The position numbers were made by a program, and so were the translations under genes. The notes under the pieces are model-generated. The model saw only the letters and a program-made list of their open reading frames with translations. It had not been told where the DNA came from and ran no database searches. This document shows, one piece after another, positions 1 to 63,268 of a stretch of 64,000 bases of DNA. The stretch is taken from sequence record MZ444140.1. One strand, 5' to 3'. Numbering within the stretch: position 1 is the first letter of the stretch; each line of letters opens with the position of its first letter.

Positions 1-355
1 ATGCATGTACACTAATGGGTTTGGTAGTAATTTCACTACTTGTCCCTGAAAAATGAGTTGTAGCTACATATAACTGGGTATCATCAACTAACCCATTTGG
101 ATCCCTACCAACATGTACAAATGGTGGCCTGCTAGAAACATTAGGATGGTCGTCTTTAATAACAAGATGACCATCTTCAGATGGGTAAGCATAGTCATAT
201 CCAGTTACATAGATACGTAGAGCGCCATTCTTAAATGCTTCTTTAATATAAGAATATTCTTCAAAATTAAAACGAATTGAATCAACCACAGCAGTAGTTA
301 ATTTAAGAATAGGGTGTAGTGGCCTTGATGAGTTATTATTCTTAATTAATAGCAT
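1..355 (-). CDS. Hypothetical phage protein, truncated by the window edge (MLLIKNNNSSRPLHPILKL...)
   Basis: Hand translation: ATG at 355-353, open frame running off position 1; overlaps the end of the 342-677 gene; absent from the supplied ORF track. Confidence 0.7.
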   Translation of the reverse strand, partial: MLLIKNNNSSRPLHPILKLTTAVVDSIRFNFEEYSYIKEAFKNGALRIYVTGYDYAYPSEDGHLVIKDDHPNVSSRPPFVHVGRDPNGLVDDTQLYVATTHFSGTSSEITTKPISVHA

Positions 356-23950: not shown

Positions 23951-23988
23951 AACTCAGCATAAAGCCTCCCCTAGGGGAGGCAATATGT

Positions 23989-29762: not shown

Positions 29763-29786
29763 TAGCATAGTTTTTAACAACATAAA

Positions 29787-29804
29787 GCCTCCCCGAAGGG
29801 AGGC
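29787..29804 (-). terminator. Terminator of the sheath-tube operon
   Basis: GCCTCCC-TTCG-GGGAGGC-TTTATG on the minus strand. Confidence 0.75.
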
Positions 29805-29812
29805 GATATGCT

Positions 29813-49944: not shown

Positions 49945-50011
49945 TTACTATATTAAAAAAAATATGTGCGTATTAATAATAAAGCCCTCCCCGAAGGGAG
50001 GGTGTATTTCA

Positions 50012-57944: not shown

Positions 57945-59855
57945 ATGAATAAAATGCTAAACTTCCTAAACCGTACGCTATATAGCAGTACTGAGAAAGT
58001 ATCTTCAAAAGCAGCGCCGAGTATTGAACACTTTAAAACTAATGTCGAGCAAGTCGATAAAAAGATTCTACAACCCTTTAGTACTAAGTTTAAAACCATT
58101 CTGAAAGAATGTTACAGCAATGAAGAGTGGGTTGAAGAACAATCATTTATTGAAGAACCTATTGATCTTGGTTCAGCTGCGCGTGGTCTTACCGAACGCG
58201 GTATTATGCGTGGTGATTGGGGACGCTTAGCGCATTCCACTATTAAAGAAGCAGAAGGTATGATGCGTACTTATAGTGGTCGTCTAAATGAAGATATGGA
58301 GGCATCTGAAATTAATGAAGTAATTCGAGATATGCCTTATAACTTCACAGCTGGTTCAGCTAATACTGGTCGTTTAGAAGAAGATGATTCTATTTTTGTT
58401 GAAGCAGATACAACAGTAGTTGAACCTTTATCTAAGCAGACTCTACCAAAAGTAGCAGAACTTACTAATCAATTAGTGGAAGTCTATAATCGAATCACCG
58501 AAGAATTTACAGAAACGGGTATTGCTAAGGTTGACCAGGTTGAACAACCTGCCGTTCTTGTTGCACTTGGTGAAATCATTAGTAGTTTTAATAAACTAAT
58601 TGATGCCTCATGTGGTGCTATTCCAGTTGAAGAAATTGTAACTGAAGAAGATCCGCTACCTGCTATTGTTACTGGGCCAACTACTGAACCAATTGATGGG
58701 GAAGTTCCAGCAGTCGATGCTATCAACAATACTGCATTAGAAGAGTTTATTGAAGAAGTATTAAGTACTAATCCTGAATTTATTAAATACCAAAGTATGA
58801 ACGATAGTAATATTGATTCATATCTAACTGGAGATGACTGGATTATACTAAAATTTAAAGATGGCTCTTATTATTTATACAATGCCCAAAGTGTTGGTGA
58901 AACGAATATAGAAATCATGAAAGATATGGCCGAAACTGGCAGTGGTCTTAATGGTTTTATAAATCGAGTTATTCGTGGTAGTTATGTAGAGAAGACCATC
59001 AGTAATGAAATCGTTAGTACTCCTGGCTTTGAGCAGTATAATAGTAACGACCAAATCATTTACATTCATGTAGGAAATAAACTGCATGTCTCAAATGAAG
59101 GTCTTATTGACATCATTAAGAGTATCTTCGACTCTGGTCCTGAGATCAATCTCGATAAAAAGAAGAAAGCTATTGCTACGCTAAAAAGTACTTATGGTGA
59201 CGCTAACTGGGTGGCAGAAGCAAAGCTTAAAACCGGCGAAGTAAAAGTATCGAATTACGGGACGTTCGCATCTAATGATCCTAAGACCGCAAAAGTTAAT
59301 ATTACTAATGCTGTAGCTAAAGCTGATCATCACAACCAGAAAGTTCTGGATGAGAACAGTAAGATGCTAGCCCCCGTGGTTAACCTGTTCAAAGGGAATG
59401 ATTGGCAAGACCCTAAGAAAGTCGCTACTCTTCTAGCTGAATGGAAACCCAAGGTAAAGACAAACTTCCAAGAACCCAAATGGCCGGATAATGCTGGTAC
59501 TAAGATTAAGTTACTTGATGCTACCGGTATTGTGGAAGCAGCTAACGTTATCATTGACATTTTGTCTAACAACACTAAGACTATTGCGGACACTTGGTTA
59601 GCCCAGTATCCTGACCTATCTGTCAATGGGGATATCTACAAACATAAGCTATCCACTATTAAAGATAAAGATGCTCTTGAGGACATATATCTGCTGGCTA
59701 AACGGGCCGATGACATCATTCTTAACATTCATGCAGCGTATGATGATGCTAAGGTTGAATCTACATATCGAGTATTTGCTATCGATATGTTGAAACTAAT
59801 GCAAGCGTCTATCAGTAGCTTCCCAAGTGGTTCATCCGTAGAGAACACCAATTAA
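57945..59855 (+). CDS. Virion head protein (gp303 position), multidomain with an internal KTSC-like domain
   Basis: 636 aa; several S/A/G-X-E head-protease-type sites (SSTE, ALEE, PGFE, VSNE). Confidence 0.6.
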   Translation: MNKMLNFLNRTLYSSTEKVSSKAAPSIEHFKTNVEQVDKKILQPFSTKFKTILKECYSNEEWVEEQSFIEEPIDLGSAARGLTERGIMRGDWGRLAHSTIKEAEGMMRTYSGRLNEDMEASEINEVIRDMPYNFTAGSANTGRLEEDDSIFVEADTTVVEPLSKQTLPKVAELTNQLVEVYNRITEEFTETGIAKVDQVEQPAVLVALGEIISSFNKLIDASCGAIPVEEIVTEEDPLPAIVTGPTTEPIDGEVPAVDAINNTALEEFIEEVLSTNPEFIKYQSMNDSNIDSYLTGDDWIILKFKDGSYYLYNAQSVGETNIEIMKDMAETGSGLNGFINRVIRGSYVEKTISNEIVSTPGFEQYNSNDQIIYIHVGNKLHVSNEGLIDIIKSIFDSGPEINLDKKKKAIATLKSTYGDANWVAEAKLKTGEVKVSNYGTFASNDPKTAKVNITNAVAKADHHNQKVLDENSKMLAPVVNLFKGNDWQDPKKVATLLAEWKPKVKTNFQEPKWPDNAGTKIKLLDATGIVEAANVIIDILSNNTKTIADTWLAQYPDLSVNGDIYKHKLSTIKDKDALEDIYLLAKRADDIILNIHAAYDDAKVESTYRVFAIDMLKLMQASISSFPSGSSVENTN

Positions 59856-59894
59856 CGCAATACACTCATCGATGTTGAAAAATAATTTACTGAG

Positions 59895-60056
59895 TATGTA
59901 ATGATATGTAGAAATGATCCCTCCCCCTCGTTTCTACATTAGTCATAATAGATCGGAGCCAGTTCCCCTTCCAGCTGGCTTCAAGAGAGTAAAACTCTCT
60001 ACTGGGCATTCATGACGATATATTGCCTCCCTTCGGGGAGGCTTTATATTTTTTTT
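59895..60056 (+). ncRNA. Candidate small RNA with three hairpins and a terminator
   Basis: TATGTA start motif; stems 59906-14/59931-39, 59955-62/59975-82, 59984-90/59994-60000; UUCG terminator 60025-60056. Confidence 0.5.
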
Positions 60057-60110
60057 GTTTTTTACTAGTGTACCTTAAAATATGTATAAATAACATAGAG
60101 TAATTATAAC

Positions 60111-60557
60111 ATGATTAAAAATGAACTTTTACCAGGGCTAATCTATGCCCAAAAAGAATTTGATAAAATTGCAGCTAATGTAAAAGACTATGATAAATAT
60201 AAAAGACGCGAAGCTGGTCGGGCAAGTGCCGTTTTAAGAAGTCTAGTAAATAATATTGTAAATCAGAATAAACCATCTTCACTTAAACATGACGGTAAAG
60301 TTAATATCACTAATGAATATTTAGAAGAAGTTAATGATTACTTCTTTAATATTAGTAATATTAAATTAATTCCTCCTAAACATATAAAAGAAAAATTAAC
60401 AATTGATCTAATGAATATTTATGTTAAATGGAATATGCTTGGGGTAGCTGGTCGAAATGATGTACCAATCATTGAGCACAGAATTAATAATTGGTGTGAA
60501 GTAACTGATGTCTACATTAATGGTAATAAGATAACTTCTTTACAATGGCCTATCTAA
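60111..60557 (+). CDS. Hypothetical protein
   Basis: 148-aa ORF. Confidence 0.7.
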   Translation: MIKNELLPGLIYAQKEFDKIAANVKDYDKYKRREAGRASAVLRSLVNNIVNQNKPSSLKHDGKVNITNEYLEEVNDYFFNISNIKLIPPKHIKEKLTIDLMNIYVKWNMLGVAGRNDVPIIEHRINNWCEVTDVYINGNKITSLQWPI

Positions 60558-60633
60558 TACTAAAATAAGTTAAGTAATTAATAGATGTTGTAATAAAATA
60601 CCTAGCATTACATGTTATGTATTGAAGCACAAT

Positions 60634-60718
60634 GCCCGAATGGTGAAATTGGTAAACACAGAAGACTTAAAATCTTCCGACTACGGTCTTGTCGGTTCGA
60701 ATCCGACTTCGGGCACCA
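60634..60718 (+). tRNA. tRNA-Leu (UAA)
   Basis: Cloverleaf with long variable arm; anticodon loop CTTAAAA; GTTCGAATC; encoded CCA. Confidence 0.95.
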
Positions 60719-60727
60719 ATTTAAATA

Positions 60728-60803
60728 CGGAGTGTAGCGCAGTTGGTAGCGCACCTGCTTTGGGAGCAGGATGTCGGGAGTTCGAGTCTCCCCACTCCGA
60801 CCA
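60728..60803 (+). tRNA. tRNA-Pro (UGG)
   Basis: 76 nt; CCTGC-TTTGGGA-GCAGG anticodon arm; encoded CCA. Confidence 0.95.
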
Positions 60804-60811
60804 TTTAAATA

Positions 60812-60840
60812 TAAAACCCCTCTGCCATGGAGGGGTTTTA
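60812..60840 (+). terminator. Terminator after the tRNA pair
   Basis: TAAAACCCCTC/GAGGGGTTTTA. Confidence 0.7.
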
Positions 60841-60861
60841 TATTGAATTGAGATAATAGGC

Positions 60862-61083
60862 ATGGATATTGCAACAATGTTTGTTTTAGCGATTCATGTA
60901 GGGTTGTTTGGAATTACATCCATAGAAGAATCGACTATCCAATTTGAAAATAAAGCACAGTGTATTTCGCGTCTAGATATTTTAGAAAACAAGTACCATG
61001 GATACGAGGTACTACGAACAGAGAATACGTTGAAAGTTACTAATCCTGACGAGTATTCTATTTTTATTTTCAAATGCCTTTAA
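60862..61083 (+). CDS. Small protein with a hydrophobic N-terminus
   Basis: 73 aa; signal/TM segment followed by F.....QC motif. Confidence 0.55.
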   Translation: MDIATMFVLAIHVGLFGITSIEESTIQFENKAQCISRLDILENKYHGYEVLRTENTLKVTNPDEYSIFIFKCL

Positions 61084-61179
61084 GAGAAAATTATAGAACA
61101 CCAAGAACAAAAAGCGCTACTAAAAGAACCATTGCAGAAACTTTAAAATCTTACGTTTAGCCCCCGCTTATGTAATGGA

Positions 61180-61380
61180 GTGATAGCTCCTGATTGGATT
61201 CACCTGACCGATGAAGTAACCTTATTCCCAAACGGATTAGATATTATAATCAATGATATTACACGTTGTATCAAATGGGAACTTATCGAGGAGAATGTAA
61301 GTAATATTACTTATGTTGAAGCCATGTTCTTTAATAAAAGTCTTAAAGCAGTTAGGGCATATCTCAAACATACGGAGTAA
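61180..61380 (+). CDS. Small hypothetical protein
   Basis: 66 aa; GTG start with GGAG RBS. Confidence 0.55.
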   Translation: MIAPDWIHLTDEVTLFPNGLDIIINDITRCIKWELIEENVSNITYVEAMFFNKSLKAVRAYLKHTE

Positions 61381-61382
61381 AT

Positions 61383-61730
61383 ATGAACCATCTAACACAA
61401 ACACAGAACGCCGTATATTTCACATTTGTTAGTCCTGAGTTTATGAAACTAACTCTTGTTGAATCATTTGTAGCTATCCACAAGAAACATCCAGAAGTAA
61501 AGCACTGTGTTAAGAAAAAGATTAGTGCTAATGAAACGCAGTTTATCTTTATCTTCAAAGATGGGACTGATAATTTAATCGTCACCCGTAAGACTGAGCC
61601 CTGTCCTGAACTGGATAGTCCAGTAGGTGATATAATTAAGTTGTCTGGTGAAGAACTTAAAAATATTCTCACTAAACATGGTCGCCCTAGTGACAGTAAC
61701 TATTTTAAGCATTGGACAGACCGTCCATGA
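61383..61730 (+). CDS. Hypothetical protein
   Basis: 115 aa with GGAG RBS. Confidence 0.65.
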   Translation: MNHLTQTQNAVYFTFVSPEFMKLTLVESFVAIHKKHPEVKHCVKKKISANETQFIFIFKDGTDNLIVTRKTEPCPELDSPVGDIIKLSGEELKNILTKHGRPSDSNYFKHWTDRP

Positions 61731-61774
61731 TATTATAAAATCCCTATGTATGCCAATATGTAGGTAATGAATTA

Positions 61775-61851
61775 GGGCCTATAGCTCAGTTGGTTAGAGC
61801 AGGCGACTCATAATCGCTTGGTCGCAGGTTCAAGTCCTGCTGGGCCCACCA
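61775..61851 (+). tRNA. tRNA with CAU anticodon, most likely tRNA-Ile2 (lysidine) rather than Met
   Basis: 77 nt; GGCGACTCATAATCGCTTGGTCGC as in E. coli ileX; C4-G69 and C5-G68 pairs. Confidence 0.85.
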
Positions 61852-61860
61852 AATTAATAA

Positions 61861-61899
61861 AGCATAATGCCTTCCCTATTTAAGGGGAGGCATTATGCT
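61861..61899 (+). terminator. Long palindrome after the tRNA
   Basis: AGCATAATGCCT/AGGCATTATGCT perfect 12-bp outer stem. Confidence 0.7.
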
Positions 61900-61975
61900 G
61901 TCTACGATAATAAAATAAATATCTGAACCGCAAAGGTTATCTTATGACTTAACTGTATTACTTGAGAATATACTC

Positions 61976-62983
61976 ATGTTTGAATTACTATTATCACCAG
62001 ATATAGGCGAAGAGTTACCCTTGGTTGGATTTAATGAAATTATTAAATTAGGTGATCTGCCTGTGGCACTAGCTGGTACAATGTCATATGTGGATGGAAA
62101 TACACTGTATGTTGGATCTGGTCATCATACTGAAGGGCAAACAGCTGCAACTGTGTTCAGACGTTTTACCATATCGCCATTTGCCGATATAGGTGCAACT
62201 GCTTCTGGAACATTCTTACCAGGGGTATCTTTAGGATTTGGGACATTACATAAGAATAACTTTATTGTTTATGGCGGTATTACTGGATGGAACTCGGCTG
62301 GTAATGGTGGTACGGGAACATCTAACTTTATACAACATTTTGATATAGCTACAGGCAATAGGGTTGAGCGATATAGTGGCCCCGTACCACTTTGGGGCAC
62401 AGCCTCCGCATCAGATGGTAATGATCTTATTCTATGCGTTAACCCAATTGGCGTAAACACAATGCGATTAAAACCATCAAGTAAGTCTTGGCTTAGCGGG
62501 CAAGACTACGCAGGTGGTGCTCGTTCAGGTCAACAGTTATTCTTTTATAATGGTTACTTTTACCATTTTGGTGGTTGGGATAATACAAAGAACATACCTA
62601 ATCTTGAAGTTTATCGATATAATGCAACTACCTTAATATGGGAGCAAACACCTTGGATGATTATACCTGCTGATAAAGGAACAATCTGGCAAGGTAATGG
62701 TTATGTAGATGGTGACTATTTTAATTACCTTAACGCTGTTAATGTCGGCGGTGTAACTAAAATGTTTGCACAACGTTTTAATATTAGGCGCCGGAAATGG
62801 GCTGAACCATTTGAACTAGGTATCGGATTCCTCAATATTTCATCTATAGCTAAAGGTCCGGATAATAGCATGATCATTGTAGGTGGATCTAAAATGCCAG
62901 TTGGTGGTGGAGCATACATGTTGAAAAGCCAATTGTTATCAGGTATCTATCAGGTAAAACTAGCACCATTAATCATTGATTAA
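61976..62983 (+). CDS. Kelch-repeat beta-propeller protein, likely virion/tail-associated
   Basis: LYVGSG, IVYGG, YHFGG and IIVGG repeats; MFELLLS N-terminus. Confidence 0.75.
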   Translation: MFELLLSPDIGEELPLVGFNEIIKLGDLPVALAGTMSYVDGNTLYVGSGHHTEGQTAATVFRRFTISPFADIGATASGTFLPGVSLGFGTLHKNNFIVYGGITGWNSAGNGGTGTSNFIQHFDIATGNRVERYSGPVPLWGTASASDGNDLILCVNPIGVNTMRLKPSSKSWLSGQDYAGGARSGQQLFFYNGYFYHFGGWDNTKNIPNLEVYRYNATTLIWEQTPWMIIPADKGTIWQGNGYVDGDYFNYLNAVNVGGVTKMFAQRFNIRRRKWAEPFELGIGFLNISSIAKGPDNSMIIVGGSKMPVGGGAYMLKSQLLSGIYQVKLAPLIID

Positions 62984-63032: not shown

Positions 63033-63141
63033 TATGTAAGAGTACTATACTAAAGTATTCTTAAATCTATCCACTAAACACACTCGGTGGTAGAACTTAT
63101 TATAGAGTGTGTCTAAATGCCAGGGGTTTGCCACCCCTGGC
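63033..63141 (+). ncRNA. Candidate pseudoknot-containing small RNA
   Basis: H-type pseudoknot 63066-63112 plus an 8-bp GC hairpin 63119-63141. Confidence 0.5.
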
Positions 63142-63268
63142 TATATTCATTGTTACTATTATAAATTCATTTATAGATGAGAAAAGGTTTTATCACCTTT
63201 TCAAAATCGGCATTTGATTCTAGTTAAAAAAACTGAATCTATGCTACATTGTAATAAAGGAGTCTATT

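Follow-up and report, generated by a model that had tools for sequence, protein, structure and literature searches.

The stretch from 59908 to approximately 60048 of the window (the whole 64,000-nucleotide piece of record MZ444140.1 that was analysed) is almost certainly a genuine gene for a small non-coding RNA, orthologous to the phiKZ transcript TU237 with its terminator T131. The RNA itself is already known from phiKZ, so that the novelty of its discovery is low, and the Northern and ONT-cappable-seq evidence is that of phiKZ and not of the window phage. New here are the recognition of a single-copy family shared across genera, a three-way-junction fold backed by covariation, a start-site assignment, the link to gp303 and the constraint on the loops.

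Locus, published transcript and predicted start site

The window represents a phiKZ-like jumbo phage of Pseudomonas aeruginosa, Pseudomonas phage PA7 (MZ444140), to which the 601 bases around the sRNA are 100% identical. The same 601 bases are matched at 88-94% identity (blastn) by phiKZ, KTN4, SL2 and ~45 other Phikzvirus records. The sRNA occupies a 255-base gap between the homologues of PHIKZ303 and PHIKZ302, on the same strand as both genes, and tRNA-Leu, tRNA-Pro and tRNA-Met are located downstream of this gap, at 60634-61851. The flanking genes and the predicted promoter elements are as follows:

57945-59855, + strand: PHIKZ303 homologue, virion head protein (636-aa ORF)
59883-59891, + strand: upstream element like the phiKZ middle-promoter motif (AAanTTACc / TACT), by sequence match only, ~17-21 nt before the start
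59905-59908, + strand: TATG initiator of the non-virion RNA polymerase (nvRNAP), by motif match, with predicted +1 at G59908
60111-60557, + strand: PHIKZ302 homologue (148-aa ORF; 91% identical protein)

The transcripts of phiKZ were mapped by ONT-cappable-seq (Putzeys et al. 2024, microLife, PMC10914365). TU237 is 141 nt long, is ended by terminator T131 and lies upstream of PHIKZ302. A Northern blot confirmed both its length and its abundance, and a longer, full-length read-through form was detected in addition. It was classed there as a 5'UTR-derived RNA resulting from premature termination, one of 17 phiKZ '5'UTR-derived ncRNA candidates', and the paper's passages on it describe neither a structure nor covariation nor conservation across genera. 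The locus, strand, TATG and UUCG terminator of TU237 are all shared by the window copy, whose predicted length is likewise 141 nt. The two phages are 88% identical over the intergenic gap, and inside the RNA 130 of 141 positions are identical and the fold is the same; three of the 11 differing positions are in or beside loop 1. The covariance model R1, among whose inputs was the phiKZ copy, scores the window and phiKZ copies alike (115 vs 118 bits). An earlier note, made from the letters alone, had proposed a discrete phage sRNA at 59895-60056: the 141-nt Northern signal of the phiKZ ortholog (PMC10914365) bears this out, and the likely extent, 59908 to ~60048, is slightly inside the proposed unit. 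Earlier work on phiKZ by dRNA-seq (10 min post infection) and by Grad-seq did not report the RNA, nor was it addressed in later phiKZ papers (antisense knock-downs, transposon mutagenesis), and we found no functional study of a TU237-type RNA in the literature.

Late promoters of phiKZ consist of TATG with G as +1, and TATG is necessary for transcription by nvRNAP, while middle promoters add an AAanTTACc/TACT element ~20-24 nt upstream. The TATG at 59905-59908 is invariant in 13 of 13 homologues. TTACT is found at 59887-59891, and Pawinskivirus and PhiPA3 keep both the TTAC-like element and its distance from the second TATG. The two copies of TATGTA listed by the earlier note (59895 and 59905) are indeed present, although the informative motif is TATG and the second copy alone is kept in phiKZ, where the first reads TATC; the hexamer as such shows no enrichment, with 67 copies in the window vs 77 expected. 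It should be kept in mind that the TATG and TTAC motifs are short and frequent and that the promoter call is a matter of motif matching. A scan with a loose TTAC-N-TATG pattern was too unspecific to rank promoters and was set aside.

The RNA data relevant to the window are contigs of public RNA libraries containing a phiKZ-like phage of ~90% identity, so that RNA ends and levels are unprovable from them. These contigs cover the sRNA stretch, and one Nanopore cDNA contig begins with GTAGAAATAAT, no more than one base from the predicted +1, which, coming from a contig, is weak evidence. In the phiKZ copy, 141 nt counted from the G of TATG end six bases past the terminator hairpin. G59908 is also the first base of the first pair of the 5'-terminal hairpin P1. 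It is thus highly probable, as far as the letters allow us to judge, that the RNA is transcribed on the + strand by the phage nvRNAP from TATG, with G59908 as the predicted +1; the promoter class is one that we infer.

The upstream neighbour is constant: the sRNA lies directly 3' of the gp303 homologue in Phikzvirus, Pawinskivirus and PhiPA3. The gene after it is gp302 in Phikzvirus, tRNA-Leu(UAA), ~40 nt past the terminator, in Pawinskivirus, and a 73-aa gene (gene 374) in PhiPA3, with tRNA-Leu ~1 kb further. tblastn gave no match for gp302 in PS119XW and a weak match in PhiPA3 that is not adjacent to the sRNA; the sRNA is therefore not tied to its downstream gene. Since the downstream gene varies and gp302 and tRNA-Leu have separate TATG(TA) sites of their own in the window, the sRNA is better called an independent gene 3' of gp303 than a 5' UTR of gp302. 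In this respect our description differs from that in PMC10914365, where TU237 is a PHIKZ302 5'UTR-derived product, whereas the comparative data tie the RNA to the 3' side of gp303.

Further copies of TATGTA are located at 60081-60086 (27 nt ahead of the gp302 start), 60616-60621 (15 nt ahead of tRNA-Leu) and 61745-61762 (13-30 nt ahead of tRNA-Met). Their placement is consistent with a putative nvRNAP start site for each of gp302, tRNA-Leu and tRNA-Met, and the phage tRNAs have been reported to be nvRNAP-dependent. The PHIKZ302 homologue (60111-60557) has a Pfam winged-helix match below threshold. In a 2025 preprint, a phiKZ orf302 transposon mutant adsorbs to P. aeruginosa Env201 and yields no progeny, and gp302 is called a defence inhibitor; a polar effect on the directly downstream tRNA cluster would be an alternative reading of this phenotype. 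Within the cluster, the 962-base segment 60811-61774 (tRNA-Pro to tRNA-Met) is replaced by 313 other letters in the phiKZ-like RNA-library contigs, which means that the small-gene content between the tRNAs differs between the window phage and the strain used for RNA-seq.

Fold and conservation across three genera

The + strand of the RNA folds at -59.4 kcal/mol, compared with -34.8 +/- 3.7 for 200 shuffles (z -6.68, none of the 200 as good). The predicted parts of the molecule are the following:

59908-59937, + strand: P1, 5'-terminal hairpin in both the MFE and centroid folds, with the 10-nt C/U-rich loop UCCCUCCCCC (loop 1) at 59918-59927
59942-59946 with 60012-60016, + strand: P2, closing helix of the three-way junction that holds P3 and P4 (from the fold)
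59955-59982, + strand: P3, 10-bp hairpin, the most conserved part, with loop CCCCUUCC at 59965-59972
59984-60000, + strand: P4, short hairpin inside the junction (from the fold)
60017-60056, + strand: intrinsic terminator, T131 ortholog, with an extended A-U stem, the G+C stem 60025-60042, UUCG and a U-tract

The succession of three hairpins and a terminator seen by the earlier note is confirmed by this fold, although the fourth helix, P2, had been missed; the cUUCGg terminator with a U-tract was recovered by the terminator scan. Its G+C stem, GCCUCCC-UUCG-GGGAGGC, lies at 60025-60042 and is followed by the U-tract, the extended hairpin spans 60017-60050, and the 3' end is predicted near 60048. 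With UUUAUA... as its 3' tail, the RNA has a poor U-tail of the Hfq type. No other terminator was found in the interval from gp303 to the next gene, and for this reason the sRNA may double as the 3' UTR of the gp303 mRNA. One contig from an Illumina RNA library, with a match to the gp303 gene as well, stops at 60050, which is a contig end and not proof of an RNA end.

A near-identical cassette, ATAT-GCCTCCC-TTCG-GGGAGGC-TTTAT, recurs in the window at 29782-29809 (-), 23959-23986 (-), 49986-50001 (-) and 60020-60047 (+); the UUCG hairpin is a generic terminator of the window phage. With regard to known RNA families, an Rfam search of 59000-62500 on both strands with E up to 10 gave nothing at the sRNA locus, and ARAGORN and the Rfam tRNA model, applied for tRNA- and tmRNA-like RNAs, match only the three true tRNAs at 60634-61851.

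Homologues of the RNA were found beyond Phikzvirus. The core is 72-76% identical (blastn) in the Pawinskivirus phages PS119XW, HPP-Temi, phiLBG22, phiHQ, PA1C and BRkr, and a further copy in PhiPA3 (genus Miltoncavirus) was revealed by an IMG/VR pattern scan. Searches of the complete phiKZ, PS119XW and PhiPA3 genomes with R1 found exactly one copy in each. The model gave no match in 201phi2-1, EL and OBP and a marginal one in D6 (E 0.9). A match in RVTF4 (18 bits) was rejected, as it is inside a coding frame and the loops are missing. A relaxed P3 pattern yielded 22 loci, of which only PhiPA3 and PA7 are real according to the covariance model; the others carry P3 alone or give a weak full-length match (L020, 16.9 bits, E 0.07). 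The >100 unrelated matches from an IMG/VR scan with an AT-rich promoter pattern were discarded.

The Phikzvirus and Pawinskivirus RNAs, folded independently, have the same architecture; the PhiPA3 MFE fold keeps P1, P3, P4 and the terminator and has a different closing helix and an extra small hairpin. In a 10-sequence alignment, 96% of the cells of P1, P3 and P4 are paired, a figure that drops to 38-53% when the partners are slid; compensatory double changes are seen in five pairs, and none of 500 shuffles reaches the covariation score. Two of these pairs, with changes across genera, are in P1 and two in P3, where 100% of the cells are paired, and one pair covaries in P4 (A-U, G-C, U-A), which also has one A-C mismatch in Pawinskivirus. 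The sequence of P2 is entirely different between Phikzvirus (GUCAU/AUGAC) and Pawinskivirus (GACCACAGC/GUUGUGGUC), and two compensatory changes occur among the Pawinskivirus variants PS119XW, HPP-Temi and phiHQ. The P2 equivalent of PhiPA3, CUCGGC/GUCGAG, is hand-drawn and absent from the MFE fold. While the P1, P2 and P4 stems drift, six of the nine counted P3 stem pairs are invariant in the three genera.

Pawinskivirus and PhiPA3 carry a single-stranded insertion of 40-60 nt between the junction and the terminator. In PS119XW (locus L003, 726-790) and PhiPA3 (locus L012, ~100-140, minus strand), it contains CCCCUCCUUUC and UCUCCUUGUUGUGUUGAUG. In 201phi2-1, the corresponding gap downstream of gp455 (locus L150, 8731-8927) contains a TATATGTAAC site and the hairpin of a terminator but no homologue of the sRNA; the transcriptome paper on 201phi2-1 does mention an sRNA immediately ahead of a tRNA.

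The same data bear on the strand and on the coding capacity of the gene. The earlier note had considered that, read on the other strand, the loops would be GGA-rich and could act as an RsmA sponge, and the reverse complement of the loops does have GGA/GGGAGG; the window phage also has an ORF (59914-60015) that would give a 33-aa protein. Nevertheless, a transcript of the opposite strand serving as an RsmA/RsmN sponge, or such a protein, is extremely improbable, and both readings were rejected. The fold of the - strand is weak (z -2.9 vs -6.7). Many stem pairs are G-U pairs, conserved ones among them, which would become A-C mismatches on the other strand, and the strand is thereby fixed. In addition, the terminator, the TATG and the published transcript are all on the gene strand. 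An RNA of the RsmY/RsmZ type on the transcribed strand is contradicted by the lack of an Rfam match and of any G, and hence of GGA, in its apical loops. The sole ORF start, ATG 59914, is ATA in phiKZ, 124.01 and T2P and is absent in Pawinskivirus and PhiPA3, so that the RNA can be regarded as non-coding.

Another possibility is that the locus acts mainly in cis, as a 3' UTR and terminator module of gp303 and/or as a leaky leader dosing read-through into gp302 or the tRNAs, in which case the short RNA would be a stable by-product. The class of premature-termination 5'UTR products and the full-length read-through described for phiKZ in PMC10914365 speak for it, as do the position of the Pawinskivirus terminator (~40 nt before tRNA-Leu, which has no clear separate promoter there) and the presence of only one terminator between gp303 and the next gene, with gp303-matching RNA contigs reaching 60050. 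We consider a mainly cis-acting role fairly unlikely, however, because the downstream partner differs by genus (gp302, tRNA-Leu, PhiPA3 gene 374) and because gp302 and tRNA-Leu have their own TATG(TA) sites in the window. Moreover, the apical loops are conserved and the junction nucleotides are not, which is the opposite of a riboswitch-type sensor; the 40-60 nt insertion in two genera leaves no conserved expression platform or antiterminator pairing; and a terminator alone needs neither P1-P4 nor invariant loops. A riboswitch or attenuator is likewise not indicated, since the junction letters and the downstream gene differ between genera and there is no Rfam cis-regulatory match at the locus. 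Pairing of loop 1 with the 3' arm of the terminator (antitermination) was dropped as a candidate, being kinetically unlikely and not conserved in the other genera.

Exposed C/U-rich loops and functional readings

The two single-stranded C/U-rich loops reported by the earlier note are present, with unpaired probabilities of 0.8-1.0 (0.84 for the P1 loop and 0.81-1.0 for the P3 loop). In the window phage, 14 of the 20 loop letters are C, compared with 19% C genome-wide (p ~9e-7), and none is G. Conservation, on which the note's reading depended, is also found: in all three genera the loop of P3 has the same core, CCCUUCC(A), and loop 1 stays C/U-rich, its variants (UCCCUCCCCC, UCCUUCCCCC, UCACUCCU and CCUACUCCU) all being pyrimidine-only and C-rich. 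Pawinskivirus and PhiPA3 have extra accessible single-stranded CCUCCUU / CUCCUU stretches between the junction and the terminator. C-rich pyrimidine runs of >8 nt in phiKZ, PS119XW and PhiPA3 are apparently, for the most part, the 5' arms of terminators of the UUCG type; two C/U runs in sRNA loops are therefore unusual for the genome.

These data raise the question of what the loops might bind. Our preferred reading, tentative and held with less than even confidence, is that the RNA acts in trans by pairing of its loops with purine-rich ribosome-binding sites; both the action in trans and the nature of the targets are inferred from the architecture. The two exposed, G-free, C/U-rich apical loops would be the pairing surfaces, with the CCUCCUU/CUCCUU stretches of Pawinskivirus and PhiPA3 as possible additional ones. 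They would pair with GGA/GGAG-type sequences, for example in ribosome-binding sites, and the pairing would hide the site from the 30S subunit or mark the mRNA for decay, presumably in middle to late infection.

Phage mRNAs were scanned for targets: phiKZ, PS119XW and PhiPA3 each contributed 360-408 predicted start regions, and the window 86. No outlier above the random-window background appeared among these phage start regions, and the duplexes of the loops with start regions were barely stronger than those with random windows (means of -6.6 vs -5.2 and -6.1 vs -5.5 kcal/mol). The best matches lay in terminator 3' arms, which are already engaged in pairing. Furthermore, loop 1 of phiKZ is without CCUCC and reads CCUUCC, and the complement of the P3 loop, GGAAGGG, is non-canonical for a Shine-Dalgarno sequence. 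Thus, as regards the earlier note's claim that the loops are complementary to ribosome-binding sites, the C/U motifs are exposed, but no specific match was found in the phage start regions. Base pairing ranks first among the functional readings and is plausible, although the phage target scan added no support to it.

The degree of conservation of P3 allows a different interpretation: a host or phage protein that recognizes pyrimidine-rich hairpin loops would bind P3 and the C/U-rich loop 1, and the abundant RNA would titrate or deliver it. The invariance of P3, which extends to six of nine stem pairs and 7-8 loop letters, exceeds what seed pairing needs and therefore points to recognition of the whole hairpin, e.g., by a protein. 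The lack of a convincing phage RNA target in the scan is also in its favor, and the confinement of the RNA to P. aeruginosa-infecting relatives (it was not found in 201phi2-1, OBP, D6, RVTF4 or EL) fits a host-specific partner. On the other hand, the three-genus restriction may just reflect close kinship, and the GGA (RsmA/N) and A-rich (Hfq/Crc) motifs are absent from the transcribed strand. We regard protein binding as possible but doubtful.

It is also conceivable, though unlikely, that the RNA is a phage mimic of the ribosomal anti-Shine-Dalgarno tail, which would mask host ribosome-binding sites or RsmA-type GGA sites (shut-off) or serve as a decoy for a factor or nuclease. An abundant middle/late transcript would then present two to four exposed CCUCC/CUCCUU/CCUUCC surfaces, and in the decoy version it might attract a host factor or defence nuclease whose normal target is the 3' tail of 16S rRNA or the anticodon loop of a tRNA. 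A host-directed role would fit the occurrence of the RNA in P. aeruginosa-infecting relatives only and its adjacency to the tRNA cluster and to the candidate anti-defence gene orf302.

That the RNA imitates the 16S rRNA 3' tail or a tRNA anticodon loop so as to soak up such a factor or nuclease is, taken by itself, very unlikely. Loop 1 and the Pawinskivirus linker do carry CCUCC and CCUCCUU, which match the 16S rRNA 3' tail, GAUCACCUCCUUA, with CCUCCUU as the anti-Shine-Dalgarno core. The invariant CUUCCA also resembles the anticodon loop of tRNA-Gly(UCC), and the gene heads the phage tRNA cluster and adjoins orf302. However, the P3 loop of 8-10 nt and the register of its stem misfit a 7-nt anticodon loop, and likenesses as short as these are expected of any C/U-rich loop.

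Significance and comparison with known systems

The model nucleus-forming jumbo phage phiKZ, in which transcription is separated from translation, is a relative of phages used in therapy, and to our knowledge very little work has been done on regulatory RNAs in strictly lytic phages. The sRNA belongs to the small number of phiKZ ncRNA candidates that a Northern blot supports. Its standing as an independent single-copy gene conserved in three genera, its defined architecture and its two constrained, exposed loops turn an 'abundant short transcript' into a testable hypothesis on the manipulation of translation or of a host RNA-binding factor. For annotation, it offers a family that can be modelled, has no Rfam match and is unannotated in all the phage records examined.

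The other phiKZ ncRNA candidates (3'UTR_PHIKZ298 / 5'UTR_PHIKZ297, the 5'UTR of p40 and the RNA upstream of gp182) are likewise short, structured, terminator-ended, intergenic and made by the phage polymerase, and have no sequence similarity to the TU237-type RNA. Cross-genus conservation had previously been reported for the gp182-associated phiKZ RNA only. An ortholog of the other Northern-confirmed phiKZ ncRNA (3'UTR_PHIKZ298 / 5'UTR_PHIKZ297) lies 3 kb downstream, at 63033-63146, and corresponds to phiKZ 270595-270485, re-annotated; it has a TATG at 63033-63036, a length of ~110 nt and a GCCAGGGG...CCCCUGGC terminator and is without C/U-rich loops.

In Firmicutes, several unpaired C/U-rich loops of S. 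aureus RNAIII and of RsaE/RoxS pair with G-rich ribosome-binding sites. The RNA described here resembles these sRNAs in having several C/U-rich loops, which is an analogy of mechanism and not homology (no Rfam match), and it differs from them in belonging to a lytic phage of a Gram-negative host, whose phage start sites show no enrichment. Type I 3'UTR-derived sRNAs, such as DapZ and MicL, are transcribed from an internal promoter and share the terminator of the parent gene. Similarly, the promoter element of our sRNA overlaps or follows the end of gp303 (in phiKZ, the TTAC-like element is in the last gp303 codons), and the sRNA appears to share the terminator of gp303, the only one found; unlike DapZ and MicL, it would be made by a phage non-canonical polymerase and has a poor U-tail. 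Finally, the tRNA cluster of phage T4 encodes small stable RNAs (species 1 and 2 / RNA C and D). Like these, the sRNA is a non-tRNA RNA at the tRNA cluster of a lytic phage, and unlike them it has, in Phikzvirus, a promoter and a terminator of its own.
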